From: Oikopleura dioica
Taxonomy: Eukaryota > Animalia > Chordata
Assembly (NCBI GenBank): GCA_907165135.1
Contig: OU015567.1
Location: 930,001 to 994,000, forward strand
DNA: 64,000 nt
Direction of reading: 5' to 3'
The notes under the pieces were generated by a model. It was given only the letters and a program-made list of their open reading frames with translations, was not told the DNA's origin and searched no databases. The translations under genes and the position numbers were made by a program. Shown piece by piece: positions 1 through 43,000 of this stretch. Within the stretch, counting starts at the first letter, position 1. Every line of letters begins with the position of its first letter.

Positions 1-1426
1 CCAAACCTAGCGACATTTTTAGATACTCAAACTGCTTGTCATTAAATATAAAAGAAGTATATTCCCTCTTTCCTTGTCTTAAAGCGAGAGTATAAAAAGC
101 ATTACGAATATCGATGCTGGAAAAATATATTTGTTCCCCTGGAAAATCAGATTTCAACTCCGTAATATATCTCGAAATAGTGGTAAGGATCGTTCTTATG
201 GTCTGAATTGGCCACCTCGGCAGAATTAACCTCTCATTAAGCGATTTTTGTCCCCTCGATGCCCCGCTATAATTTTGAACGATTCTAATTGACCCGTCAG
301 ATTTTGGAACAGTTAGCAGAGGGGCGTTCCATCCAGAATTTCCCAATCTTATTATCCCAGCAGTCTCCATCTCCGATAATTTTCCCTCTACAGCTGGTAA
401 TTGACTATTGTCCATATTATACGGTTTAGCAAAAGTAGGAACCCCTGCATCATCAATAACAAGGTCTGCAACAAAACTACAACTGTATCCACAATCACTC
501 GAATTTCTTGAATAAATCCAATGATGCTTATTGAGAACAACTATAAGCCCCGGTTTATACTCTTGAGGAGCTCCTTCTGCGGCTGCTAGAATTTCTGCTG
601 AAATATCTGACTCATTGACTAATTGATTACGCCGCTCGCGCCAGATTTCGATTTCTTTTTCATGAACAACCCTCTCAAAATTTTCTATTTGTCCCATCTC
701 CCTTAGGAAATTTATTTGATTCCGCTCAACTATTTCTAAAATTGGAAAATTTTCGCTTACAAGTACCCCAATGCCCGTGTGATTTTCAAGTTTAATTAAC
801 GTCCTTGATGAGTCAAGTTCTCGATTTAAGTTCGCGTAAATTCCATTTTCAAGGAGCTCGAAATCTGTATCAGTAAAAACTTTCTTTAATTGATGATTGA
901 TTCTGGCCCATGCGTGACCATGCGGTGGAACATAAACATCTGCCCTCACTAAAATGCACTTTCCTCTCTTGCTCATGTCTGGATTATCTAAAATAACCCA
1001 CGGATACTCCTCATAATCATCTTCGACTATTTGCATATTATTCAAATACAGAACCCTCGAATTCAGAACACGTTTAAGATCAATAAATTTCAGAACATCA
1101 AACCCCAAAATCCCATCATATGAAAGATCATTATTCCAGATGTTAATTTCAACATTACTACAACAAACTGAACTATCCAAGCCTTCAATTCGGATGTCAC
1201 AATCAATTTTCTCTATTACTCTACACATTGTTGAACCCGCCGCGTTTCCGATGCATAACGCACGTTTTCTTGGACAGAATTTAATAGAAGAACCCTCAAG
1301 AAGACCCTTTTTGACAAAACTTTTCTCAGAACCAGTATCAACTAAAAAACAAAATGGCCCCTTCTCGACTTTTGATATCCCTAAAAATTGACATATCGTT
1401 ACCAAAACGGTTGGTAACGAGCTCAT
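1..1426 (-). CDS. pol: Pol polyprotein, N-terminal part (aspartic protease and start of reverse transcriptase); runs off the window edge, so absent from the ORF track
   Basis: Hand translation is stop-free from ATG 1426 to the edge. Motifs: FLVDTGS (D at 1337-1339), YDGILGFD, GIIRLGNSGWNAPLLTVPKSDGSIRIVQNY, LNERLILPRWPIQTI, FSSIDIRNAFY, KQFEYLKMSLGL. Frame is -1 relative to gag. Confidence 0.93.
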   Translation of the reverse strand, partial: MSSLPTVLVTICQFLGISKVEKGPFCFLVDTGSEKSFVKKGLLEGSSIKFCPRKRALCIGNAAGSTMCRVIEKIDCDIRIEGLDSSVCCSNVEINIWNNDLSYDGILGFDVLKFIDLKRVLNSRVLYLNNMQIVEDDYEEYPWVILDNPDMSKRGKCILVRADVYVPPHGHAWARINHQLKKVFTDTDFELLENGIYANLNRELDSSRTLIKLENHTGIGVLVSENFPILEIVERNQINFLREMGQIENFERVVHEKEIEIWRERRNQLVNESDISAEILAAAEGAPQEYKPGLIVVLNKHHWIYSRNSSDCGYSCSFVADLVIDDAGVPTFAKPYNMDNSQLPAVEGKLSEMETAGIIRLGNSGWNAPLLTVPKSDGSIRIVQNYSGASRGQKSLNERLILPRWPIQTIRTILTTISRYITELKSDFPGEQIYFSSIDIRNAFYTLALRQGKREYTSFIFNDKQFEYLKMSLGL

Positions 1427-1434
1427 ATTGCTGA

Positions 1435-3318
1435 TTAATCCCTCTTCTGAGCTCTTTCAGGACATTCTTGAATCCAGTGCCCTGGAACGTTACAAATTCT
1501 ACAAATATATCCGGCTGGTGGGACAGTCGACTTCTTTTCTTCTTTGCGTTCTCCTTGAGAAGAGGAGTCCTTCTGAGGTCTACGTAATGGCTTCGTACAA
1601 TCCTGAACTCGGTGTGATGAATCTCCACATCTGAAACATCCGCTTTTCGACTTATAAAAACACTCTCTCGCCGTGTGATTTGCCCTTCCGCAAACGTAGC
1701 ATTTATTGCGCAACGATTCAATCCCGCGACTCGTTGGTCTGTCACCCTTTTTCTCGCCCCATTTTTTCGCCTTCAGGGCGTTCGTTTCCGAATCAGTTTC
1801 ATCCTTCAAATTATTCACACTTGATTCAGCGGGGGTACTGTCTATTATTTGCTGGGCAAATCGAATGATTTCTTCCGGGTTTCTATCCTCGCACCCGATT
1901 CGGAAAAGAATTTGATTGGAGATCGACTTAGGCAATTTCCCCTTGAACTCGCGTAACGTAATTGCATCAATTGCGCTTTCCCCATTCTTTCCATCAATAT
2001 GATTATTCAAAAGTCCGACCAAATTTCGCAGCTCATGGAATTGTGTCAAAAGTTGCTTTTCTCTGATTATTTGGAATCGATCGATCTCCTGTTCGATGAA
2101 ATTTCTATTGTAATTGAGCAAACGCAAGAGCTCCTGGAGAACATCATTTTCATTCGGTTCCCTTTTTAATTTAAGCGCCTTGGTCACCAATGCCTGGTGT
2201 GGGTCCCCGATATGCGCCACCATGTTTGCTAGTCGCGCTTTCCGCGATGTAATATTTTGAAGATCCATAAGAAAGCAACAATTCATAAACCAGTTATTGA
2301 CATCATGAAATTTATTCTCCCCATCTTTCTTGTCGAAAAGTACTGGCAATTTCAATTTGCTCGAGAGACCCTTTGATCCAAAATCATTTCCTGCCCAGTT
2401 ACCGTATCGATCATAACCATATCTTATATTTTGAGGCTGACTCGGAGTTCTCTCGTAAGCATTCCCGCGGAAATTCTCGGACCCTTGAGCATACTCCGCT
2501 TCTTTGTCACTAGCAAGATCTCTTAACCGCCTTACTTCATCAACTTCATCCCTCATACCTCGCACCTCTTCAAGATCTCGCTCATATTCATTTGACTGCT
2601 TACTCAAATTATTCATTGAGGCCTTCATCAATTTTATTCGAGATTCAGCATTTTTTCGCATTTGCGCGAGGACTTGGTTTTGCAACATTTCAGCCTGTAA
2701 ATTCAACTGTCGCGTCTCTAAAAATTGCTTGCTCTTACGAATATTCTCCCCGAATACTCCCAATTTATCAACTTCATCGTCCCACAGGTACGATCCCTCA
2801 AACGTTGGCTCGATATCATAGTCCTCATTAGTTTTGGCTGGCTCCTCGATAGACACGGTTCCTTTTCGCTTCAAAATTTTTGCGCCATCAAACTTGAACT
2901 CTTTAAATTGATTTGTTGCAGTGTAAAACTCGAGCATGACTGCACGACAGTCTTGATCTGATGTCCCATATTCGCCTTGCTTGATTGAATTCTCGTCAAA
3001 TCGAAAAATTTCCTTTGATTCGCCAATAGCGAATTGTTTACGCGCCTCATCTAAAGTATAATCTGTGGCATATCCTCGCTTTTTCTCACCCTCAAATTCA
3101 GTGATCCCATCAATTGGAATCAAATATGCCTCCCCATGCCGATCCTCAGTAAGCGTAACCTTGAACACAGACCCCAATTCAAGCTCCATGAGCATCGCCA
3201 AAAGAGGCTCCTTATTCACATTACTCCCATTAACCCCGTGCTTTTTCGCGAGCCACTTCAAGTAGGGCAATGTCGCCGTTTCCAATTGAACACATCTTTT
3301 CACTATGCCCGAAGACAT
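1435..3318 (-). CDS. gag: Gag, 627 aa, three CX2CX4HX4C zinc knuckles
   Basis: Intronless ORF directly upstream of pol; knuckles CYVCGRANHTAREC, CFRCGDSSHRVQDC, CRICNVPGHWIQEC. Confidence 0.92.
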   Translation of the reverse strand: MSSGIVKRCVQLETATLPYLKWLAKKHGVNGSNVNKEPLLAMLMELELGSVFKVTLTEDRHGEAYLIPIDGITEFEGEKKRGYATDYTLDEARKQFAIGESKEIFRFDENSIKQGEYGTSDQDCRAVMLEFYTATNQFKEFKFDGAKILKRKGTVSIEEPAKTNEDYDIEPTFEGSYLWDDEVDKLGVFGENIRKSKQFLETRQLNLQAEMLQNQVLAQMRKNAESRIKLMKASMNNLSKQSNEYERDLEEVRGMRDEVDEVRRLRDLASDKEAEYAQGSENFRGNAYERTPSQPQNIRYGYDRYGNWAGNDFGSKGLSSKLKLPVLFDKKDGENKFHDVNNWFMNCCFLMDLQNITSRKARLANMVAHIGDPHQALVTKALKLKREPNENDVLQELLRLLNYNRNFIEQEIDRFQIIREKQLLTQFHELRNLVGLLNNHIDGKNGESAIDAITLREFKGKLPKSISNQILFRIGCEDRNPEEIIRFAQQIIDSTPAESSVNNLKDETDSETNALKAKKWGEKKGDRPTSRGIESLRNKCYVCGRANHTARECFYKSKSGCFRCGDSSHRVQDCTKPLRRPQKDSSSQGERKEEKKSTVPPAGYICRICNVPGHWIQECPERAQKRD

Positions 3319-3816
3319 CTAAAACAAAAACGATTAACCCCTTTCTAAAAATTTCACTCAAAAAAAAATGACAAAAATCACTTGACTCTTCATCTCCATC
3401 CGCTCCTATGCTCATGCACCTCAATGCAAGAACATTCCGACCCGCTCCGCAGCTCTTATGAATTCGCAATCAATGCGACTCCATTTCAACCCGCACCAAA
3501 ATATCACTATAAAGCGCACCCCGATGCGCTTCATCTTCAAAAATCATTGAAATACTACTATTCAATATTTCTCCACCAGAAAATATTTAATAAACATGCA
3601 TGTTAAAAACAATTGAATATTCAAAGCGCAATCGCCAGTAGAATTTAAGTACTTAGTTACTTTTGATTGCGTTGAATTCAAAACCCGCCATTTTGGAGTT
3701 TTCATTTACAATCAGTGTTTGTATTTTTATCAAAATTAACATGATTTTAATGCCTTCAAAACATTAAATTAAAATAAATATAATTGATATTTTAGAAAAA
3801 TATTTTAATTTTTGAA

Positions 3817-4035
3817 GCTTGATTCTTATTGGTCAGATTCTCCTTGGTCGGATTGTTATTGTTCAGATTCTCAATGGTCAGATTCTCATTCTCAGATTCT
3901 CATTGTACGGATTCTCATGACCAGATTCTTATGACCAGATTCTTGTGACCAGATTCTTGTGACCAGATTCTTGTGACCAGATTCTTGTTGGCTTGATTCT
4001 TGAAAAAATATTCTCATTCGATTGATTCTCCTTGG
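3817..4035. repeat. Tandem 14-15 bp repeat (GACCAGATTCTTGT core) in the retrotransposon leader
   Basis: Five near-perfect 14-bp units at 3919-3988, flanked by degenerate TGGTCAGATTCT units. Confidence 0.9.
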
Positions 4036-4725
4036 TCATATTCATTTTGGTTATATGCGTCATCTTTGATGAATCATTTTGGCTCTAGAGTCTCCCCGTC
4101 TCCCAAACAAAAATGTCTCACCGTCTGACCCTCTTCGCGTGAGAACGACACTTTATCTATGACGCGATTGCTTATCGTCTGTCTTATTTTATGCAATTTT
4201 GAAATTCTTCAGAAAAATTTTTTGAAAAATCACAATTTTAGAAGTTTATTAGTTAATCATAAAAAGAATAATGAAATTTGCTATATAAAAATAATGATAA
4301 GATAAATTCAAAATCATAAAAAGGTATAAATAGTTTGCCAAGTTTGTTGGTCTTTGAGCCTTTTGCCAATGAAATTGGTCTTAGAGGCAAAATAATATTT
4401 TATGTTTATAATAAAAATAAATGTAGCTTCTGAAATTATATATGGAATTTTTGGTTTTAGAACATAGAAAACAAGAAAACATTATCGATCTTATAATAGA
4501 GCCATTCAATTTTATTTCAGATTTTTGATTCATATTCACATTCGAGAATTCAAATTTGATTAGCTTCAGTTGATTTTCCCCGATTTCCCTGTCTCACTAA
4601 TGTAAATGAAAATTACCAAAACTGATTATTGAAAAATACTTTATTAAAAATAAGCTTTCAATACTTCATAAAAAATCATCTCTCTCACTCTCTCTCAAAA
4701 ATCTCCAGAAAAATGGGTAAACTAA

Positions 4726-4737
4726 CCTTTGTCACCA
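4726..4737 (-). promoter_or_regulatory. Primer-binding site TGGTGACAAAGG
   Basis: TGG-initial motif 3 nt inside the LTR end on the minus strand. Confidence 0.65.
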
Positions 4738-4740
4738 CTT

Positions 4741-4981
4741 TGTACTAGTGGTTTTTCTCGTCAAACTGCAGTATCGGTGCCGGAAATCAAGGAAGACAAA
4801 ACAACTGTATATATATCTCGGATTGGTATTTTATTTGAGCCTGTGGCTCAGGGACTCAGTGAGTGAAGAGTGAGAGCATGCAGCAAGGGGAAGGGTAGAA
4901 ACGGTCTTATCGGTAAAGGTAGGCGAGCGCTCGCAGACAGAGATAGCTGCAATAGCTGACTGATGAGAACTAACCCTTACA
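4741..4981 (-). repeat. 5' LTR, 241 bp
   Basis: TGTA...TACA termini, internal AATAAA on the element strand, followed by the PBS. The second LTR is not in the window, so the boundaries are unconfirmed. Confidence 0.75.
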
Positions 4982-5029
4982 AAAATCATTTAAATTTGTT
5001 CAATTAAAAATTATATGAATCATTATTAA

Positions 5030-5633
5030 GGACCCACCCGTCAAGATTTTAAAATATCGAAATTTAAAATTTTGACCTCGGATTCGGATTCCCTGTGCCG
5101 AAAAACCATTTTTTCGCGCCATTTAATATCCGCCTCTCTCCACTCTAACACCCTTAATAATCGAGTCAAAGTTTAAGAATTTGTAAGGGCGGTGCGACGC
5201 GCTTGGAAGCAAGTTTTTCACATTAAACATAAAAATCACGTTTTTTTATTTATTTCATAAACGGAAAGTATTTTTTATCAGAAAATTTGTTGTAACAATT
5301 ATTCATAGTGCACAATTAACGAATTTTTTGCTGTTTTTATGAATTCTATATTAAAAAGAAAAAATCACTTTCGAGTGAACCCTTTACCATATCTTTATTT
5401 TTTTTCTGGTACCCACGACATCAACCTGAGCTATATTTTGAGTCTTTAAAAATTTTTGATACTTAAGGTTATCCTAGAAATATCGATGTTTGAAACTTGA
5501 ACGTATTGTTGCGACACCCTTAAGAAGTGCACGAGCGTGCTTTTACTTCTGGTGCCCTAGACCAACTATCAGGCTACACAATCACCTCGAAATCACTTTT
5601 TGAAAAAGTAATTCCCACATGCCGGACGGGTCC
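5030..5633. mobile_element. TTAA-flanked MITE with GG termini (Kolobok-like)
   Basis: TTAA 5026-5029 and 5634-5637; ends GGACCC...GGGTCC. Confidence 0.65.
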
Positions 5634-6172
5634 TTAATGATAAAAATCGAGCAAAAGAGTTAAAGCATTTACCGCAAATTTTTCAACTATTGAGCCCTTC
5701 ATCTTGGTGTTCCGTATCAAAGACTCCGAATGTTAAAATATTAATAAAATAAATTTAACAAACTATGAATAGAGATAATTACCTCCAAAAAGCATAATTT
5801 CAATCATCACTGATACAAACCAGATCAATTGTTTCATCATTTTAAGAAGAAAAATCTCCTTTCTCGTGAAATAAAAAAGGAAATCTCAATAATTCTATCC
5901 GTTTTTAATAAGCATTAAGCGTCGTTTTGGAAAGAAAGTCTGAATCAGAAGAGTCGGATTTTACGATTTTTTGATAACGACCATGAGAAATATCGCCCTG
6001 CTTATTATCAAAAAATGAGCAAGAATGTTTTAGCAACCGAAGAGATTTATAACAATTCAAAATATGAATAAACTCGGAGGCGCTATACATGAGAGTCATG
6101 ATCATGCGAAATTATAAGATATAAAAAGAAGAACTCAAATCAAATTTTGCTAACATCTTTCTTAATCAAAAG

Positions 6173-7563
6173 ATGTCCGACTCAAATCGAGATGTTGCGA
6201 ACGCTTATAGAAGTATCCTCAGAAATATCGGAGAAAATCCAGATCGAGAAGGATTGGTAAAAACACCAGCAAGAGCCGCAAAAGCGATGGAATTTTTCAC
6301 CAAGGGGTACAAAGAAGACATAAACGATATTATGAATGAGGCGATTTTCACGGAAAAAAGTGAAGAAATGGTGATCGTCCGGGGGAACGCTACTCTAAAT
6401 TACCAATTGCTAATGCATTGCCAATTTGGATAATTCATTACCAATTTTAGGTAATGCATTACCAAACTTTCCGAAAATGGCCAATTTTTTCAAGTCAAAG
6501 AGCCAGTTCGCGCTCCGCGCATGTTTGAAAGGATACTTTTGAGATTTATTTACAGTTTGTTTCCATTTTTCCGGAGTCCATTTTTCCGGACACTTTTCCG
6601 ATTATAAAGCATTTAAGTGGGGCACTGCAGAATTGACCTTGGTCCAATTTTCCGGACATTTTTCAAATTTTATTTACAGACCATCATTTTTTAATAAAAA
6701 ATGAACACTTGACGGTTCAATGTACTTCTTTTTGGGCACTCAGTGAGCAAATTTGCGAGGTTTTTAGCTAGAAGTTTATTTCGCGGTAAATCGACTTCTT
6801 GACTGAGAAGTGTCCGTTTCTCGAAAAAATTTAAGTATACTTGGTGGGACATGCATTTTTTTTCAGGGTACCCAATTTTCCGGACATTTTTTGGAAATCT
6901 GGGGACAAAGCTAGTCCGGAAAAATGGAATCATTCTGTACGTATTTTTAAGCAAAAAAATTGAAATTCTTGAAAAAAATTGGTACCAATTTTTGGTCATG
7001 CAGTACCGAAAATCTTTGGTAATTTAGACGAGCGCCCCCGTCGTCCGGGACATTCGACTCTACAGTCTATGTGAACATCATCTTGTTCCGTTTTACGGAA
7101 AGGCGTATGTAGGGTACATTCCAAATGGAAAGATTATTGGTCTGAGGTAAGCCAATTATATGTATGTATTGTCATTTTTGTCATTTAAGCAAAATTGCAA
7201 GAATCGTTGACCATTTCGCGCGAAGACTCCAAGTCCAGGAGCGGCTAACTCGTCAGATAGCCGAGACTTTGGAGAAACAACTTTCTGCTACTGGTGTTGC
7301 AGTTATGATCGAGTGCGAGTAAATATCAAATATGAGTTTTAACAGCGAGTTAAACCGCGTTCGAAATTGATTTTGTAGCATGCGTTTTGCAAAATTTCTT
7401 TTATTGCGGACATCTTTTAACCGATATTATAAGGCATATGTGTATGACAATGCGCGGCGTCGAAAAAGAGGGCTCGAAGACAGCGACATCCTGTATGCTT
7501 GGCTGCATAAAAGAAGATCAGAAATTACGCCAAGAATTTCTCTCGCTGGTGAAAAATAGATAG
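6173..7563 (+). CDS. GCH1: GTP cyclohydrolase I
   Basis: Exons give [60 protein letters not shown] and [15 protein letters not shown] introns at 7147-7189 and 7319-7433. The first interruption (6383-7039) is a TIR element. Confidence 0.95.
6383..7039. mobile_element. MULE-like MITE with 9-bp TSD inside the GCH1 coding sequence
   Basis: TIRs GGGAACGCTACTCTAAATTACCAA / GGGGGCGCTCGTCTAAATTACCAA (20/24). Flanks ATCGTCCGG (6374-6382) and GTCGTCCGG (7040-7048). Confidence 0.85.
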
Positions 7564-8471
7564 ATACTGTCTTTTATTGACACGATTAATTTTAACAATA
7601 AAGGGACACTTAAAATATTCTTTTGAAATTTGATCATCGTTGTTCAATGTTTTCAAGAAAATAACAGAAATTTATAATTTATTTTTTCTTGAAATTTTAA
7701 GCTAGGGTAAATCCCTTATAATTGAGCAATTTTTAACCAGAGGGCAATCCTAAGAGTGTGGGTCTTTATCTTGAATTTGCTCTTAACTTTTGCACGCAAC
7801 AGTGTTGGTTTTCTGAAAATTTAGACAGGGCATTGAAAATTCCAATTGACTCTGCCATTGCAAACAATTTACGAATGGTACCACGGCCCAATAACTCGTT
7901 GTAACGAAAAATTTATTGAAAAAACGAATAATTTGTCGCAGTACTTTTCTTTTTGAGCTTAAATCAGGTCAGTAAATCATACAAAACAAAGTTTTTCAAT
8001 CTCCATGGATACCAAAAGAAGTAATTATGATATTCCTTAGGTTTAAATACGATTGGTTAGGAAAAAGATAAGTCTTAGGGATTAGGGTTAGGCAAAAGAG
8101 CTTTCTGATCCAAGCCCTTTCTGTCCAAAGCCGCCCTTGGTAAGACCTTCGGGGAGGTTGCGGGGGCTTGGCTGTTTCAATGACTTATTTTTTGAATCAA
8201 CAAATTAGCCTGAACATTACGGTTTGGTTTACTACTTGATCAAAGTTTTTCACCTTGACAAATAATTCGTTTTTTAACGATACGACCACAAATACCAACG
8301 ATGCTACAAGCTCAACAAGGGCTAAGCATGATTAATACGATGAATTTGATGATGGGTCAAACTCAACAGAATCAGCAAAATTAGCTGTTGTAAATAGGTC
8401 AGATCCACTTTATTTCTTCAGATAGACATTTTTGGAAATTAATAAAAATTTCACTCATTTTTCAAGGGAAA

Positions 8472-9646
8472 TTAAGCATCGATGAGCATTTTTCCATTTG
8501 GCTGAGATCTTCCAAGGGCGATGAAGCAAAGAGAAAGGACTGATTCAGCGCCATCTCTGGCAGTTTTAGGCTAAATTTTATGTTTTCCTTGAAATACTCC
8601 TTTCTCACCTTTTTGCCAGGAACTCCAGCAGTCATATTAGTATCGCAGAATCCAGGGCAAGCGGAATTTATCAGAATATTTTTTCTCTCAGAAACCGACT
8701 TTTTGCCGTAGAGCCGGGGTTTGCCAAAATGGAAGAGCGCGGAAAGAATATGCACTCGGACGCCCCGTGTTTTTCCCGCCGCAGAAGAGGGTGCTCTAAA
8801 CTTTTGGGACGCAAAAAAAATGGGTTGGCGCGGCGTGAGCGAAGTATTCGGAAGAAAGCGGGCGCCCGAGCGCAAATTCTTTCCGCGCTCTTCCCCTTTT
8901 ACGAACCCCTGCCGTAGAGCCGAACGAGATTGTTAACGAGTAGCTTCGACATGTCGTAACCTTAAAATATAACTGTATTTTCAACAAGTATTTCTTTAAA
9001 AACCGATCATCGACGTTTGTTCTGGACTTGGCCAACCATCAGTTTGAGCCTGAGATGGGTTTTTCTGATCTTCGATGAATCTTCTGGCAATAGTATCTAA
9101 CTCGTCGAAAGTTGTTTTCGCGAGTGAACTTCTAAAGAAAAATTAATGGATAAGGTGATCAAAAACTTACGAAGATAGCTTTTGCCCATAATCAAAGACG
9201 TAATTCTCCTCAAAGATGTTCGGATTCGGGTTCAAATTGAGCATTCCTCGCAGTCCGAAAAAGCTGGAAAGGCAGACAATTCGAGCTCCCTCGCGAGCAA
9301 GAGGAAACAGTGATTTTAGAGCAGAAGAAATTCCAAAATAATTGACATCGATGGTCAATTTGATACTCTCAAATGATTTGTCATTTATTTCTGGCGCAAC
9401 ACCTGCGTTCAAAACCAAAATATCAAAAGAAGACGGTCCCATCTTCTCTGCAAAATTCAGCACACTTTCTTCGTTGCTTATGTCTAGCTTTTCGACTTGC
9501 AATTTACCGCAATTCTCTATTTCCGGGAATCCTTGCGGGTTTCTCGCTGTCGCCACAATTTTTTTAACATCTTTCTCTCCAATTAAAAGTTTGACGCATT
9601 CAAGTCCGATTCCACGATTTCCGCCGACGACGATTGCAGTTTTCAT
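8472..9646 (-). CDS. Short-chain dehydrogenase/reductase, carbonyl-reductase (CBR)-like
   Basis: VGGNRGIG Rossmann motif, LVLNAG, DGWP, catalytic YDMSK, INSACPGFCDTNM. Short GT-AG introns including 9132-9170 and 8571-8608. Interrupted by a TIR element at 8716-8909. Confidence 0.9.
8716..8909. mobile_element. 194-bp MITE with perfect 12-bp TSD inside an SDR exon
   Basis: 34-bp TIRs GGGGTTTGCCAAAATGGAAGAGCGCGGAAAGAAT / GGGGTTCGTAAAAGGGGAAGAGCGCGGAAAGAAT. TGCCGTAGAGCC at 8704-8715 and 8910-8921. Confidence 0.92.
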
Positions 9647-10223
9647 TTCTTTGTATTTTTTGCTTTTGGCTATTGAAAAAGCTCAAAAATCGATGGGCGA
9701 AATGAGAGAAATATAAAAATAAAATCGACGTTTGCCGTGCATCGAAGCTGGTTTACGCAATCATCAACATAAAATAATCGTTAAAAAGTTGATTTCATCA
9801 ACAACAAATTAACTCGACGAGAGTTGAACAGTCGGGAAAATAGTTGATATAAGTTGTGGCTTGGAGTTTTTTGAAAAGCAGAATCGTTAAAAGCTCGAAA
9901 CGCATCTTTTTGGAACTTGACTTTGAGAAGTGAGAATAAAGAGCTGGTTTAAAATTGCGTTAACATCGTTTCATGCATCAAATTTAATTGCAAATGTCAA
10001 GGACATATTTGAAAGTTTCGAAAGAGTTTTGACTGAAATTAACGAAATCGGTCGAAATGCACTTACAAGTTGGGGTTAACATTTCGTCCCTCGGTTTCCG
10101 ATAAATTTCCAAAACTGCCATTTCGCTTTGAAGATCCAAAAAGATTATCCGAATGCTAGCTTGAAATTTCTTAGATACTTCTCAACCAATTATCGCCAAG
10201 CATCCAGAGAAAATAGTTTTTAA

Positions 10224-11291
10224 GGGTACTATCTTCGATTTCCAGAAGAGGTCTTTTCAAAAGATATAAAATAGGTGATGGTCTAAACTTTGAAGTTCTT
10301 ACGTGCGATAAGAACTTTGTGTGGCCTAAACTTTGATTCTTCCCATGTGTGATTCTATGAGAAAGTGGCCTAATCTTTGATTCTTTCCATGTGTGAAAGT
10401 GGTCTAAACTTTGAATTTCTCCTGAGGCGCTCTGACTAGTTCCATGTGTCATCACCTTGAATGAAAACCGTAAACCTAATTGGTCTGCTTAAAGCGTAGT
10501 GGCCTTAGCAGGCAGTGCTCTAGTCACCGATGGCAGAAGCGCCTCCGGGGAAATTCAAAGTTTAGGCCACTTTCTCAAAGAGTCACACATGGGAACGATC
10601 AAAGTTTAGGCCACCCGAAGTTCTTATCGCACATACGAACTTCAAAGTTTAGACCACCACCTATTTTATAAGAATCGGTTATTAGAAATAGTTTCTTCAT
10701 TAGATTTTATGATTATACCTTATTGACAACTATTCGAAATTTCAATATATCTTGAGAAATGGCCCCTAGAAGTTTTTTCGAAAAAAAATTTTGAACTTCG
10801 ATTTCCTCGATCAAGTGCTTGTTCGAAAGCTCAGAGCAAGGGCAGTATGCTGGTAGCTGTATCGATCGCGACATCAAGATATTTTCGATTTTAGAGCCAA
10901 AAATGTGTCGCAAACTTTTAAAAAATGCTAAATTTTCGCAAAATCAGCGAGACACAATTTTCAAAAAATTATTTTTGTTATTTTTAGTTTTTCAATTAAG
11001 AAATCCTTCTGTAATTTTAAAGATTAATGTTCGAATTACAAATAAAAAATAAAATAAGACCAAGTTATCAGACTTGTTTTTGAGTTATTCAACCGTTTAT
11101 ATAGGCCATTTTGGCAAAGATAACCACTTCAAGCCAAAATTTAGCCGCTTTTCGGTTGAGCAATTGATAAACACCTCTGTAATAGTTATGATCTAGGGCA
11201 GATCTATTAAATGAGCCTATATGGACTCATCAATCATTCACAAGCTCCGAGGTATTCAAGGCTCAAGTTGGGGAAATCGAAGATAGTACCC
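10224..11291. mobile_element. TTAA-flanked non-autonomous element, GG termini (Kolobok-like)
   Basis: Perfect 20-bp TIR GGGTACTATCTTCGATTTCC; TTAA at 10220-10223 and 11292-11295. Confidence 0.88.
10265..10670. mobile_element. Nested foldback element with long TIRs built from CTAAACTTTGA subrepeats
   Basis: Arms of over 100 bp beginning TATAAAATAGGTG and ending CACCTATTTTATA. Confidence 0.75.
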
Positions 11292-11900
11292 TTAAGGTGT
11301 TGAATTGAGTGTTGATTTCTGACACGGAAGAACCTGTTTCTTCTATCTGTTTGATATTTTGTCCTGTAAAAAAGTTAAAAAAGATGACTCTCATTTAATA
11401 TAGTTGATTTTAAAGCAAAACTCATAAGAAATGTAATAGAATTGATTAAAGTCGGCTAAGTTGAACTTTCTTCTATCCAAAGCTTTTTATGGCCAGTACA
11501 ATCATTAAAAAGCCGGCTGCTTAATTTTTCGTAATTGACTTCGCCGATCGGGCAGACAAAAGTCGCGGGGACACTGCCTCAAATGCTAACAGGCATAACG
11601 TACAAAAAATAAACTTTTTATCTGTAAGAGATACAAAATTTAAACTTATGTAAAAATGATTTGTGATAATTAATAAATGATAAAATGAGCTTTTACAAAT
11701 TTTTGATGAAAAGTCAAATTTGTGTACGTAACGCCGACAAATGCTCGTTATACCGCCTCATTTTTCCAGATGTCAATATGTCTAATATTAAGATAAGCTA
11801 CACATCGGGAAATATTAGTTTGACACATTTTCATAATGAGAATAAACGAAAATGAGAAGAATAGGATCTCTGTTATTTTCGTCGATAGAAGCAAAGCGAA

Positions 11901-13879
11901 ATGAACACTACGGTATACTCTGATTTTTTGTCGCTTGGAAAGAACATCGAAGAGTTTGACCTGCGACACAATTTCGGCAATGTTGATAAATTTAGACCGC
12001 CATATAAGGTAACAGAAAAGATACTCACAAATCAGAAAAAAAAAATTAACTCTTCCTAGTGAAAATCGTAGGCCAGACTTTGTCTAATAATGAATTCAGC
12101 TTTCTGTCGGAATTGTTGTTTTTGGAGTTATTTCAAATCTCAGGAACTGGTCCGATTTTAAGACAGAAATTTTTAATGATGGATTTTCGAGTTCGCCCAA
12201 AAGTATTTTATACTTCATCTTCAAGGACAGTGGAGTCGTCAAAACAGCCCTTGCTCCGTATTATCTCAACAAGAGCAATCGCTCTCGAATGATCGATTTC
12301 AACTTCTTCTGGCTTTGCTCCTTCAGCCTTTTGGATTTGCTAGCGCAATCGCTGCTTCTTGGCCAGACTTTCCGCGGCGATTCGTTTTCCGGGCGACTTG
12401 AAACTTGCCAGATTGCTTTGAGCCTCACTCATTTTTCAAGAATAATGATCTCGATTCAAATATTTTTGATTGCTTGCTACAGACTCAATATTATGACGCA
12501 AGGACTGACGACGCGTAAACGAATGACGAAAAAGCTTATTGATCAAATTTTCTGCTTTCAGATCTTGGGTGGGTAAGTTTAACCCCTCCCGACTCGATTC
12601 TAGCCCCCCTTGCCTATCAACTTCGAAGATTTTTGTCCACTCTAGGCTTGGACAACCCTAGCCCTAAATTGATTTTAGTCTGCCCTAGAATAGGGTTATT
12701 CTAGCCCTAAAGTGATATTCGCCCACCCTAAGCTTTGGTTGTCCTAGCCCTAGAGTGACTTTTGCCCACCTAGGCGAGGGTGACCTTAGCCCTAAAGTGA
12801 CTCTCACGCACCGTAGGCTGGAGTGACCCTAGCCCTAAAGTGACTCTAGCCCACCCTAAGCTAGGACAACCCTAGCCCTCAAGACTTAAGGCTAAAGTTA
12901 ATTTTGCCCACCCTTGTTTAAGACTTATGTCGCCATGATCATAGCCGGATACGAAGCCTATGAAGCTGGCAAATTTGGATCAAGAGGCTTTTTCGACGAA
13001 ATCGGTACCTTCAGGGCCAAGTCAAAAGCTCTCCTCGAAATCTTCCTCCGTTATTCGGAATATTATTCCGACACTCCTCGAAACCTCTCCAATGATGCGC
13101 TCTTTGACTCCTACTGCTGGCCAAATTCGAAGAAAAATCCTTTGGTTTTCCGAGACTCTGAATATCGCTTCGCTTTCTATACGATTATTCTTCCAATAAG
13201 CGGACTGATGCTTTGCTACTCGAAAATTGTTTTCATGGTCCGAAAGAGCTACAAACTTATCGGTAACTTTTCGTCCTTTCATTTTGCCTAAAAAGTTTTA
13301 AGATAATGCAACTCGATTGACGAGGCAGAACAAACAACGACTCGACGTTGTGCTTACAAAAAAGCTGGTGCTCGTTTTTCTGACTTATGTTCTTACCATC
13401 GGTGCTTTTCGACTGCTGCGAGTGGTTATCGAGTACGAGCTTCCGATCGATTCCAGCACTCGAAATTTTATTATTGAATGGAGCAAGCTTCTTATTCTGA
13501 TCTGGGCTCGGCAACCTGTGTGGAAAACCTGAGTCAGGCTCCAGAGTAACCAAGAAGAAAGCTTCGAATCCTGACTCAGGTTTTAACACAGGTTTTCGAG
13601 CCTTAATCCAGATCGAACCGGCTGTGAATCCGTTTTTGTATCCAATGCTTCCGGGAAGCGACATTCGATACGCCTCAGATTTCTTTGGAATTGTCGGGTA
13701 AACAAGATGAATTCAAATTCTTCCAAAGAATAAATTAAGGAAACCGTTCAGATGGGGGAGTGATAAGATGCTCAAATTTACGAGAATGGTTTCGACGGTC
13801 CGCCGAACTGGATCAGCTCGATCTCATCAGACGTCGATTCAACAAGTCGAGCAACAAATTACTACATAAAATTCATTAA
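11901..13879 (+). CDS. Orphan rhodopsin-class 7TM receptor
   Basis: MNTT N-terminus; TM1 VFGVISNL; TM2 SLLDLL; ETCQ; TM3 IACYRL; TM5 FYTIILPISGLMLCYSKI; TM6 KKLVLVFLTYVL; TM7 EPAVNPFLY. Two introns coincide with TIR elements. Exon joins are inferred. Confidence 0.75.
12567..12913. mobile_element. TIR element with internal ~43-bp tandem repeats forming the TM4 intron of the GPCR
   Basis: TIRs GGGTGGGTAAGTTTAAC / GGGTGGGCAAAATTAAC (14/17); 5-6 copies of an AGCCCTAAAGTGAC... unit at 12642-12913. Confidence 0.65.
13504..13603. mobile_element. GGGCTC-family MITE (short copy) inside the TM7 coding region of the GPCR
   Basis: TIR GGCTCG(GC/AA)AACCTGTGT..AAAACCTGAGTCAGG. Flanks TTATTCTGATCT / TAATCCAGATCG (8/12). 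Confidence 0.82.
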
Positions 13880-40058: not shown

Positions 40059-43000
40059 ATGATCGGAGACGAGCAAACTAAGAATTTCGATGAATTGATT
40101 GAACATGAGGATGTTTTGGGAGATGAAAATGAAGTAAAGAAAGAGTCTTTATTTATTCTCTATCATAATTCGAGATAACGTTCGTAACTTTAGTTTTTTC
40201 TTATTAAGGACCCCCCGTCAACAATTTTTTCTGAAAAAATCGAAAATTTCAAAATAGCCATATTTTGGTTTCTCAGTCTGCCTGGAAGTTTAATACATAA
40301 TAGAAACTTGTTCGGAGCACTTTTTGACGAATAAAAATCTAAAATTTAAGAATTATTAGGTCATTTTCGTCATTTTTCGGTGAAAAGTCCGATTCTCAAA
40401 CGCGATTTTGAGGGTGTTAGAGTCGAGATAGACCCCCAAAAAATGGAGCCTCAAAATCGTTTTTAAAAATCGTTTTAAAATCCATTTCCGGGGTCAAAAT
40501 TTTGAAATTCCGAAAATTGATTTTTCGAAAAGTGTTGACGGGGAGGGGGGGGTCCTTAACGCCGGAACGCATGAAATAGATTTTTCCCGGAACGCATATC
40601 GACCCATTTTTGGGTGAGAGCCCGTAGACCCGTTTTCTTGTTTACATCAACCAATATTTTATCATAAATATGATCTTCAGACCCCGAACTACAATAAATT
40701 ATTAGATACATGAAATATCTCTCATGTGTTGTTTTAACACTAGAAAATGACGATGTTTGAAGCCATATTTCAGCGCCTTACCCAGAAATGGGTCGATATG
40801 CGTTCCGGCGTTAATTTTATCAATATAATCCAATGAATATTATTCAAGAATTTCTTGTTTGAAGATGCGAACAGAAGTATTAATTATTCACACAATAAAT
40901 ATAAGCAAAAAAATAAATTTCTACGATTGAAATCTCAATTATGGTTTCGAAAATTTTCGATAATATATTGTCAATTTACTCTTTATATATAAACATGAAT
41001 AAAATCTCCGGAAAAGGTCGAAGTAAAAGAAGAAACAAAGTCGCCAACTCCCGAAACAGCCAAAACTGACGTCCAGATTTACCAAGAAAAGCTGATCCGT
41101 CTGGAGCGTCACTTTTCCGAAAAGGTCAAAAAGCTGCAGTCGAAGATCAGCGAGTTCATTCCCGAAATACTGAAGACGCAGTTGGACGACTTGCTTCTCA
41201 AATTCCACAACGAGATCTCAGAAGAGTTTCAAAAGCTTAAAAATCCGATTTCAGGCGACATGGCGCCGCCGGCTACTCCGACTCCCACAACGCCATCTCC
41301 CAAATTGGGTAAGCCCAGTTAGTTTGTAAATAGAAACAGCTTCCAAAATTAAATCAGTGCGATGATTCTTTTTTATTTGCCGTTTGAGATAAATATACTT
41401 TCATTGTTGGAATTATCTTCTTCGTGTTCCTCGTGAACTGATTTCAGATGGCTACGGTACTATTTTTGCCTTATGAAAATAGAACAAAAAGAAAAAATGA
41501 ATCCTAGTTAGGTTAAACTCTAGAAATTAGTTTGAGAGGGGAGAGCACTTGTTGGGGCATCTCTTAGCCAATCAAAAGCCTGTATTTTCTCAATTGACCA
41601 ATAATTGACCAGCTCCCCTTTCAAAGAAAGATACTCTTGTCCCTCCTGTATAAAATGGCTCCGAAGATAGTGGCCCTCCTTAAAATCAGTAAAAATAAAA
41701 TTTCAAAGGCATTCCTTTCGAATAAATCGGATAATAACCCGATCGCATTGCGCTTCCATTTCTTCAAAGTCCATTTCATAATCCCTCTTTATTCGCATGA
41801 TTATTTGTCCTAAACAGATTCAATCAAAATATCCTCGTTCGTTTTCGAGCTCTCTTACTTGACATACACATCTTGTAAAGCTCCTGAAGATTGTAAATCG
41901 TAAACGAGCTGCTGAATAAAAAGAAAGAAAAAGCAAGAAAACACGCATCGTTTGAACTTCTTTCTTTTTTTTTCTGATTTTAATTAATTTGGACTTGAAA
42001 TCTCGGCTAGTCGAATGATGCATTTTTTATTTTGTGGATGGATATGAATTTCGATTATCTCTCACACTTTTGCGTAAATTTTTAAATCTGTGAATAATGT
42101 TGGCACTCAGCCTCTCTTAAAAACTCACCGTAGCAACAAGTTCAGTTGAGACCGCAACCATCGCCGCTGAAGTACCGATCCTCACCGCTCCGACGCTCGT
42201 CTGTCCCACCATCCAAGCTGCTCCGATCATTCAGCAAATCCTTCCAACAGCATCGGCGATCAACGCTAGTCAGCAAAAAGTGGTGATTCCCCCGCCCCAA
42301 GTCGAAAAAATCATCGTCAACGGACAGGCCGGGCTCGGCAATCTCCGTAAAAAACCTGAGATACAGTCAAAAAGTCTTGTATGAAAAGCCGCATAGCGTC
42401 TTTCTTAAAAGAAAAGCCGCGAAGCGGCTTCGCCAAAAATCAGTTCAATTCAATTTTGGCAAAGCCGCTTCGCGGCTATATTTTTTGAAAAAGCCGCTAC
42501 GCGGCTTTTTAGTCAAGACTTTTGGCCCCTGGCTAAAGTTGGTGAGCCCAGTTGATAGGAAACAAATGTTGTTGTCCAGCCAAATGCTGTTCTCGTCCCT
42601 AAAGACACAAAAGTCCTTAGCGTACCGAAAGATGCTAAGGTCGTGGAGCCCGTTATGGCAACTTTGATAAGAAAGCGCGATCCAAAAGGTGGAGGCAAGA
42701 TTACGAAAATTTCGAATGCAAAGGTGGCGCAAGTAAAAGTTGTGCCGATAAGAAAAAGTGCTCGAATCCCGAAGCCAAGGGATGATACTGAACAAGAAAA
42801 GACAGGTAGAATATATTTTCGCCAAGAGAATGACCAGTAGATGTTTAAATTCTTTTTCTATTGTAGAGGATGAAATAGCCTACTAATCAAAAATAAGGAG
42901 AGATAAGCACCCCGGAAAGAAGTAACCCTGAGCCGCCAAAACTTGACCTGCCACCGGAAGAAAGTACCTTCGAAGTCGATTATGACTGTAAGTAAAAAGT

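Follow-up and report, generated by a model that had tools for sequence, protein, structure and literature searches.

Host gene and its interruption

The window analysed here is the whole stretch of 64,000 nucleotides; positions without a prefix are window positions, and those prefixed C5 or C1 belong to the Oikopleura dioica OKI2018_I69 genome, in which C5 is chr2. An SDR gene with four exons (9646-9171, 9131-9004, 8960-8609 and 8570-8472) lies on the minus strand. Exon 1 starts with an ATG at 9646 and encodes the cofactor motif GGNRGIG, exon 2 covers 9004-9131, and the coding part of exon 4 ends with the stop codon TAA at 8474-8472. Exon 3 is interrupted, its first part (8910-8960) encodes G-YDMSK-LLVNNLVRLYG, which includes the YxxxK motif, and its second part (8609-8715) begins with a repeat of the sequence at the break, followed by KSVSERKNILINSACPG. 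The host protein is a classical SDR of the carbonyl-reductase type: both GGNRGIG and Y-D-M-S-K are present, the Pfam adh_short family matches with 55-73 bits against a cut-off of 26.6, and among proteins of solved structure human CBR1 (1WMA, E = 6e-21) is the closest relative. The profile and structure searches were run on the exons singly, the joined coding sequence was used only for site and frame counts.

The interruption is a 194-bp non-autonomous element with terminal inverted repeats (TIRs), found at 8716-8909 from its inverted ends and from comparison with its sister copies; its GC content is 56%. A perfect 12-bp target-site duplication (TSD) borders the insert; one copy is at 8704-8715, towards the 3' end of the gene (plus-strand sequence TGCCGTAGAGCC), and the other is at 8910-8921, towards its 5' end. 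The repeat is 13 nt if the next G is included (8704-8716 and 8910-8922). On the strand of the gene the TSD reads GGCTCTACGGCA, which covers the codons R-L-Y-G-K. The inverted arms at 8713-8765 and 8860-8912 are 53 nt long and 83% complementary, of which 3 nt in each arm are flanking sequence; a second comparison gave 50 nt at 84%. Within the element proper, the arm alignment places the low-coordinate TIR at 8716-8765, starting with GGGGTTTGCC, and the high-coordinate TIR at 8860-8909. The latter starts the insert on the gene strand and contains a candidate GT donor at 8902 and a TAA stop codon at 8901-8899. A perfect 12-mer bordering inverted repeats is far above the chance expectation. Folded as RNA, the element and its flanks form a single long hairpin (-107.6 kcal/mol, z = -6.9). 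A scan of 8400-9300 against Rfam gave only sub-threshold chance matches, the element therefore contains no known RNA gene.

The TSD lies eleven codons past the K of Y-D-M-S-K. In the alignment with human CBR1 this position is at the end of helix aF, before the loop preceding strand bF, and the loop is variable in length (a 2-residue gap relative to CBR1). When the element and one copy of the TSD are removed in silico, an 849-nt reading frame encoding 282 amino acids plus a stop is restored, with no internal stop codon, and the exon sizes of the restored coding sequence (476/128/146/99) are those of the uninterrupted paralog g4727. In the interrupted gene LYGRGS is followed by the TAA at 8901-8899, and the frame closes three codons into the insert. 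The earlier note on this DNA, made from its letters alone, had described a 194-bp element with a perfect 12-bp TSD in an SDR exon, at the codons RLYG/K about ten codons after YxxxK and between intact flanking exons. This description is accurate, the spacing being eleven codons as measured here and the flanking exons forming the open 849-nt frame once the element and one repeat are omitted.

The insertion is shared by a tandem array

The SDR gene belongs to a tandem array of GCH1-SDR units at C5:877000-943000, the right end of which is window 1-13000. In each unit a GTP cyclohydrolase I (GCH1) gene is convergent with the SDR gene. Both might act in pterin (BH4) metabolism, a guess from the two enzyme families. 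Self-comparison of chr2:850-994 kb reveals a mosaic of duplicate blocks with 95-99.9% identity. The array holds five SDR copies, three of which are intact apart from the insert (at 881 kb, at 922 kb and in the window). In the copy at 903 kb (C5:903315-904152) exon 1 lacks 160 nt and exon 3 has gained an A, which causes a +1 frameshift; this copy is plainly a pseudogene. The fifth copy, at 912 kb (C5:911719-912437), is truncated by a duplication breakpoint within intron 2. This dead copy is nonetheless annotated as a 208-amino acid protein, g4121.

All four array copies that retain exon 3 carry the insertion, at the same site, with the same 12-bp TSD and in the same orientation (C5:880873, 903315, 921502 and 938716). 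The last of these is the 194-bp copy in the window; the sister inserts are 366 bp (C5:880873-881238), 261 bp (C5:903315-903575) and 367 bp (C5:921502-921868). The exon 3 sequence next to the insert does not vary among the four carriers. Between these invariant exons the centre of the element differs by three distinct deletions or replacements and several substitutions. Relative to the 366-bp version, the window copy is missing about 171 bp from the middle, with a deletion junction between 8850 and 8851, and the 261-bp insert has a central replacement unlike that of the window copy. By this comparison the 194-bp version is an internal-deletion derivative of an element of about 366 bp.

Because the insertion and its TSD are shared by four tandem copies, the insertion predates at least three duplications. 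A transposon insertion common to the array is almost certain. It is most simply explained if the ancestor of the array was hit once and at least three duplications came later. The earlier note had called the insertion very young and offered two alternatives, an intron caught at birth or a fresh null allele. Of this the exonic transposon insertion stands. The age does not, since the insertion predates the amplification to four copies and has been internally deleted since, and neither does a single fresh allele, since an identical insertion is found at four tandem gene copies.

Two distant paralogs, g4727 (C5:3.135 Mb, 282 amino acids) and a gene at C1:1.743 Mb, have a contiguous exon 3 of 146 nt; these empty sites are paralogous, not allelic. 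Comparison of the array gene with g4727 gives dS = 0.34 and dN/dS = 0.20, purifying selection has therefore acted on the lineage over most of its history. The array copies differ from each other at 0.6% of exon sites and at about 3% of flank sites. Judged by these divergences, the insertion is a late event in the SDR lineage.

The GCH1 gene is also interrupted by a transposon. Its coding exon (window 6173-7090) is split after ..EMVIVR by a 658-bp MULE-like element at 6383-7040 with a 9-bp duplication (TCGTCCGGG). We considered this element as a relative of the SDR insert and rejected it, it belongs to a different family with a 9-bp duplication. The GCH1 insertion is common to all four units, with sister copies at C5:879362, 900439 and 919163. 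An uninterrupted GCH1 paralog at C5:3953276 is 72% identical over 69 amino acids of the first exon searched.

The element family

The 64-Mb genome contains one other locus with these ends, a 1043-bp element at C1:13007702-13008744, whose ends share 80-89% identity with the ends of the 366-bp element. Its flanks, TAGTTATTGTCA and TGGTTATTGTTA, are identical at 10 of 12 positions and only a length of 12 gives register; the chance of such a flanking repeat is P about 5e-5. The 12-bp repeat at an independent locus therefore makes the 12-bp TSD a property of the element family. A search of the 64-Mb genome with a 21-mer of the element end, allowing 3 mismatches, found no further copies and no autonomous partner, nor was a transposase-bearing partner with these ends found. 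The weaker genome matches to the end motif were rejected as elements, they are chance matches to purine-rich coding DNA. The family thus consists of two independent loci, and not of the many dispersed copies expected of a MITE-like family. A metagenome contig scan for the junction between exon and duplication gave no match. A metagenome scan with a 19-mer of the inverted end gave 32 matches, in soil, sludge and similar samples, which we judged to be due to chance because they are single and unpaired.

To our knowledge, the described eukaryotic TIR superfamilies have TSDs of 2-11 bp. The 12-bp TSD at two independent loci lies outside these lengths and is the one unusual feature of the family.

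Splice options across the insert

The TSD contains no AG, so exact removal of the insert at an AG acceptor is impossible, as the earlier note had seen from the repeat. The note had also proposed two in-frame options. In option 1 a GG donor at 8907 is joined to an AG ending at 8699, with the loss of one amino acid. In option 2 a GT donor at 8902 is joined to an AG ending at 8685, with the loss of four amino acids, to give LYGRGSKNIL. Both options are real, but neither is special. All G[N] donors between 20 nt ahead of the element and 45 nt inside it were paired with all AG acceptors between 45 nt ahead of its end and 40 nt past the second TSD copy; 33 of the 100 pairs are in frame, which is the third expected by chance. 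Thirteen pairs are also free of stops, these change the length of the protein by -11 to +18 amino acids and include no exact solution. In-frame splice options were therefore rejected as evidence of splicing, since their frequency is the chance rate.

TC|GTAAAA at 8902 is the sole good GT donor; joined to the first AG of GAGAG it would shift the frame, and only the second AG preserves it. GTAAAA is closer to the donor consensus than GTTTTT, the donor of the SDR gene's own intron 2. The sequence flanking the in-frame, stop-free options is identical in all carrier copies. The candidate intron would be at least 209 nt long, 56% GC and strongly folded, whereas the gene's own introns are 38-43 nt long with 19-29% GC. 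On the minus strand an open frame without an ATG runs for 137 codons (8462-8875), from the interior of the element into the second part of exon 3; with this frame open, internal acceptors (an AG ending at 8755) would add 13-18 residues and not remove a few.

The public models of the three intact copies, g4116, g4123 and g4124, are all 203 amino acids long and end by reading into intron 2. The public OKI2018_I69 models were built by AUGUSTUS with RNA-seq hints (PMC8008620). That these models end after exon 2 is weak evidence against splicing, because the reads of near-identical copies are often dropped as multi-mappers; the truncated models may only reflect such discarded reads. Protein word searches found no transcript-derived protein of the SDR gene, the matches were the genome's own models and relatives with 67-87% identity.

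In O. dioica 11-12% of introns are non-GT-AG (PMC8008620), non-canonical introns are tolerated (PMC8008620, PMC7072748), and the species is credited with transposon-derived introns in Table 1 of PMC3443670, which tabulates Denoeud et al. 2010.

Signs of constraint

The three intact copies have five exon differences, of which four are synonymous and one is non-synonymous (P about 0.016). There is no indel in 3 x 849 coding nucleotides, compared to two in the nearby UTRs (P about 0.016), and the synonymous bias and the absence of indels combine to P about 0.002. The exons downstream of the insert's stop codon have one change, which is synonymous. Variable sites are as frequent in the introns and element termini (2/279) as in the exons (5/849; P = 0.68). 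With introns and termini no more variable than exons, the small divergence of the exons can be explained without selection at the level of the protein. The pseudogene carrier copy likewise has few exon substitutions.

Exons are less variable than flanks (5/863 versus 43/1444 variable sites, P = 3e-5), and the gene body including its introns is 2.5-5 times less diverged than the flanks. We rejected the contrast between exons and flanks as evidence of selection, the introns and termini being equally conserved and the duplication blocks of mixed ages. The evidence is therefore mixed: there are weak signs of constraint, offset by the equally conserved introns. Gene conversion, or recombination with insert-free functional alleles, could be a source of the same pattern.

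Origin and fate of the insertion

A small non-autonomous DNA transposon, with TIRs of about 50 nt and a 12-bp TSD, entered exon 3 of a carbonyl-reductase-like SDR gene as a single insertion in the ancestor of the GCH1-SDR tandem array. Segmental duplication then spread the insertion to at least four gene copies, in which the hairpin-prone centre of the element lost DNA separately, to give the 366/367-bp, 261-bp and 194-bp versions. If the insert is not efficiently removed in frame, translation would meet the stop three codons inside the element and the carriers would be disabled, redundant copies. On balance we favour this outcome, in which the carriers are disabled amplified copies. A shared exonic transposon in the GCH1 gene of every unit is what is expected of a decaying duplicated segment, and two exonic transposons in every unit, the sparse annotation and two dead SDR copies all fit a redundant, decaying, amplified segment. 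Splicing would still be compatible with this context in a genome where 11-12% of introns are non-canonical.

Another possibility, to which we give some credence, is that the insert is spliced imprecisely at cryptic sites in the end of the element and the downstream exon, and that the three intact copies still encode working reductases. The insert would then be a young intron of transposon origin, already multiplied by duplication and varying in length from 194 to 367 nt. Such splicing has in-frame, stop-free options with flanks identical in all copies, and a GTAAAA donor better than that of intron 2. The 4:1 synonymous bias, the lack of coding indels and the intact exons past the stop with their one synonymous change point in the same direction; the length-variable loop at the insertion site, a hairpin that draws the two ends of the insert together and the tolerance of O. 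dioica for non-canonical introns (PMC8008620, PMC7072748) would also suit it. However, in-frame pairs occur only at the chance rate, and with the GT donor the first AG of GAGAG leads to a frameshift. The candidate intron is rich in GC, folds back on itself and has five to nine times the length of the introns native to the gene, the annotated models do not span it, the introns are as conserved as the exons, and the element family of two loci has no record as an intron maker. The fuller version of this history, a TIR transposon of an undescribed 12-bp-TSD kind that is spliced inexactly (perhaps by GG-AG or hairpin-aided GT-AG) in a gene that was amplified after it had gained the intron, is in our view less likely than not.

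Two other origins of the shared insertion are less plausible than these. The array could have formed first, the insertion then spreading by gene conversion or unequal crossing-over, or some of the copies could be uncollapsed haplotypes; either would allow the insertion to postdate the duplications. The low divergence of the gene body and its introns relative to the flanks would be expected from conversion, the four carriers do not differ in exon 3 next to the insert, block identities are a mosaic of 95-99.9%, and the assembly is from one animal (PMC8008620); some array copies may be misplaced haplotigs. Five structurally distinct gene copies nevertheless exceed what two haplotypes can give, and a recent conversion tract across the element would have erased the divergence of its centre between invariant exons. 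We regard this order of events as improbable. The insert might otherwise be filler DNA captured in the repair of a staggered double-strand break, as has been proposed for some new introns; it is bordered by short direct repeats and has a very low copy number. The inverted ends of about 50 nt, together with a second locus with 80-89% identical ends and a 12-bp flanking repeat, disfavour filler DNA and make this origin extremely unlikely.

Comparison with known systems

Several known systems resemble the SDR insert. MITE introns in Fritillaria have reportedly been described by Henriet et al. in 2019, and Huff et al. are said to have described introners, intron-generating transposon families, in 2016. 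In maize, Ds and dSpm insertions in exons (wx, adh1, bz) are reported by Wessler and colleagues to be spliced imprecisely via cryptic sites in the ends of the element. The non-autonomous Mutator-like elements (MULEs) have target duplications of 9-11 bp.

The maize insertions are the best analogue of a spliced SDR insert: an exonic transposon is removed inexactly, with small in-frame changes and partial function. They differ in that splicing was shown by cDNA and for single alleles, whereas the SDR insert has been amplified in a gene array. The MULEs share with the SDR insert their long inverted ends and long target duplication, but the SDR insert family has a duplication of 12 bp at both loci instead of 9-11 bp, and no transposase-bearing partner of the MURA type was found. 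The larvacean transposon-derived introns occur in the same group of organisms, where 11-12% of introns are non-GT-AG (PMC8008620), and likewise involve a small inverted-repeat element within coding sequence. They differ from the SDR insert, which belongs to a family of two loci and has no exact excision; splicing here is only a candidate.

Introner families are defined by copy number, with tens to thousands of nearly identical elements that form introns in mutually unrelated genes (Gozashti et al. 2022, PMC9860276), and by TSDs of 3-9 bp, which usually supply a splice site. In some of these families splicing leaves the coding sequence a few codons longer or shorter (PMC9860276). The SDR insert resembles them in its TIR and TSD architecture and in candidate splices that would likewise change few codons. 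It differs in being one genic insertion event, with a 12-bp TSD that has no AG and apparently without a matched donor and acceptor pair, and segmental duplication is its only multiplier, not the presence of numerous copies as introns of unrelated genes. With two loci the family falls outside the published definition of introners (PMC9860276).

If the insert is spliced, three near-identical paralogs would carry differently sized versions of one transposon-born intron, with an uninterrupted paralog as a control, in an animal noted for its fast turnover of introns and its relaxed splice-site requirements. This would be a compact natural experiment on the tolerance and reshaping of a new intron, in which intron birth is directly followed by intron diversification. 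If it is not spliced, it would be an ordinary disabling insertion in a redundant amplified gene, with the lesson that a perfect target duplication does not imply a unique or fresh event. The exonic transposon insertion is itself an already known kind of event, its one unusual feature being the 12-bp TSD.

Two other repeats were observed in the course of these comparisons. At about 42333-42549 the window contains an element with GGGCTC...GAGCCC ends that is unrelated to the SDR insert; a 12-bp duplication around it is unconvincing, because the flanking 12 nt match at only 6 of 12 positions. In the 1043-bp element on C1, positions 320-621 correspond to another repeat, about 300 bp long, with at least ten loci on several chromosomes, and the copy in the centre of the C1 element is probably a nested insertion.
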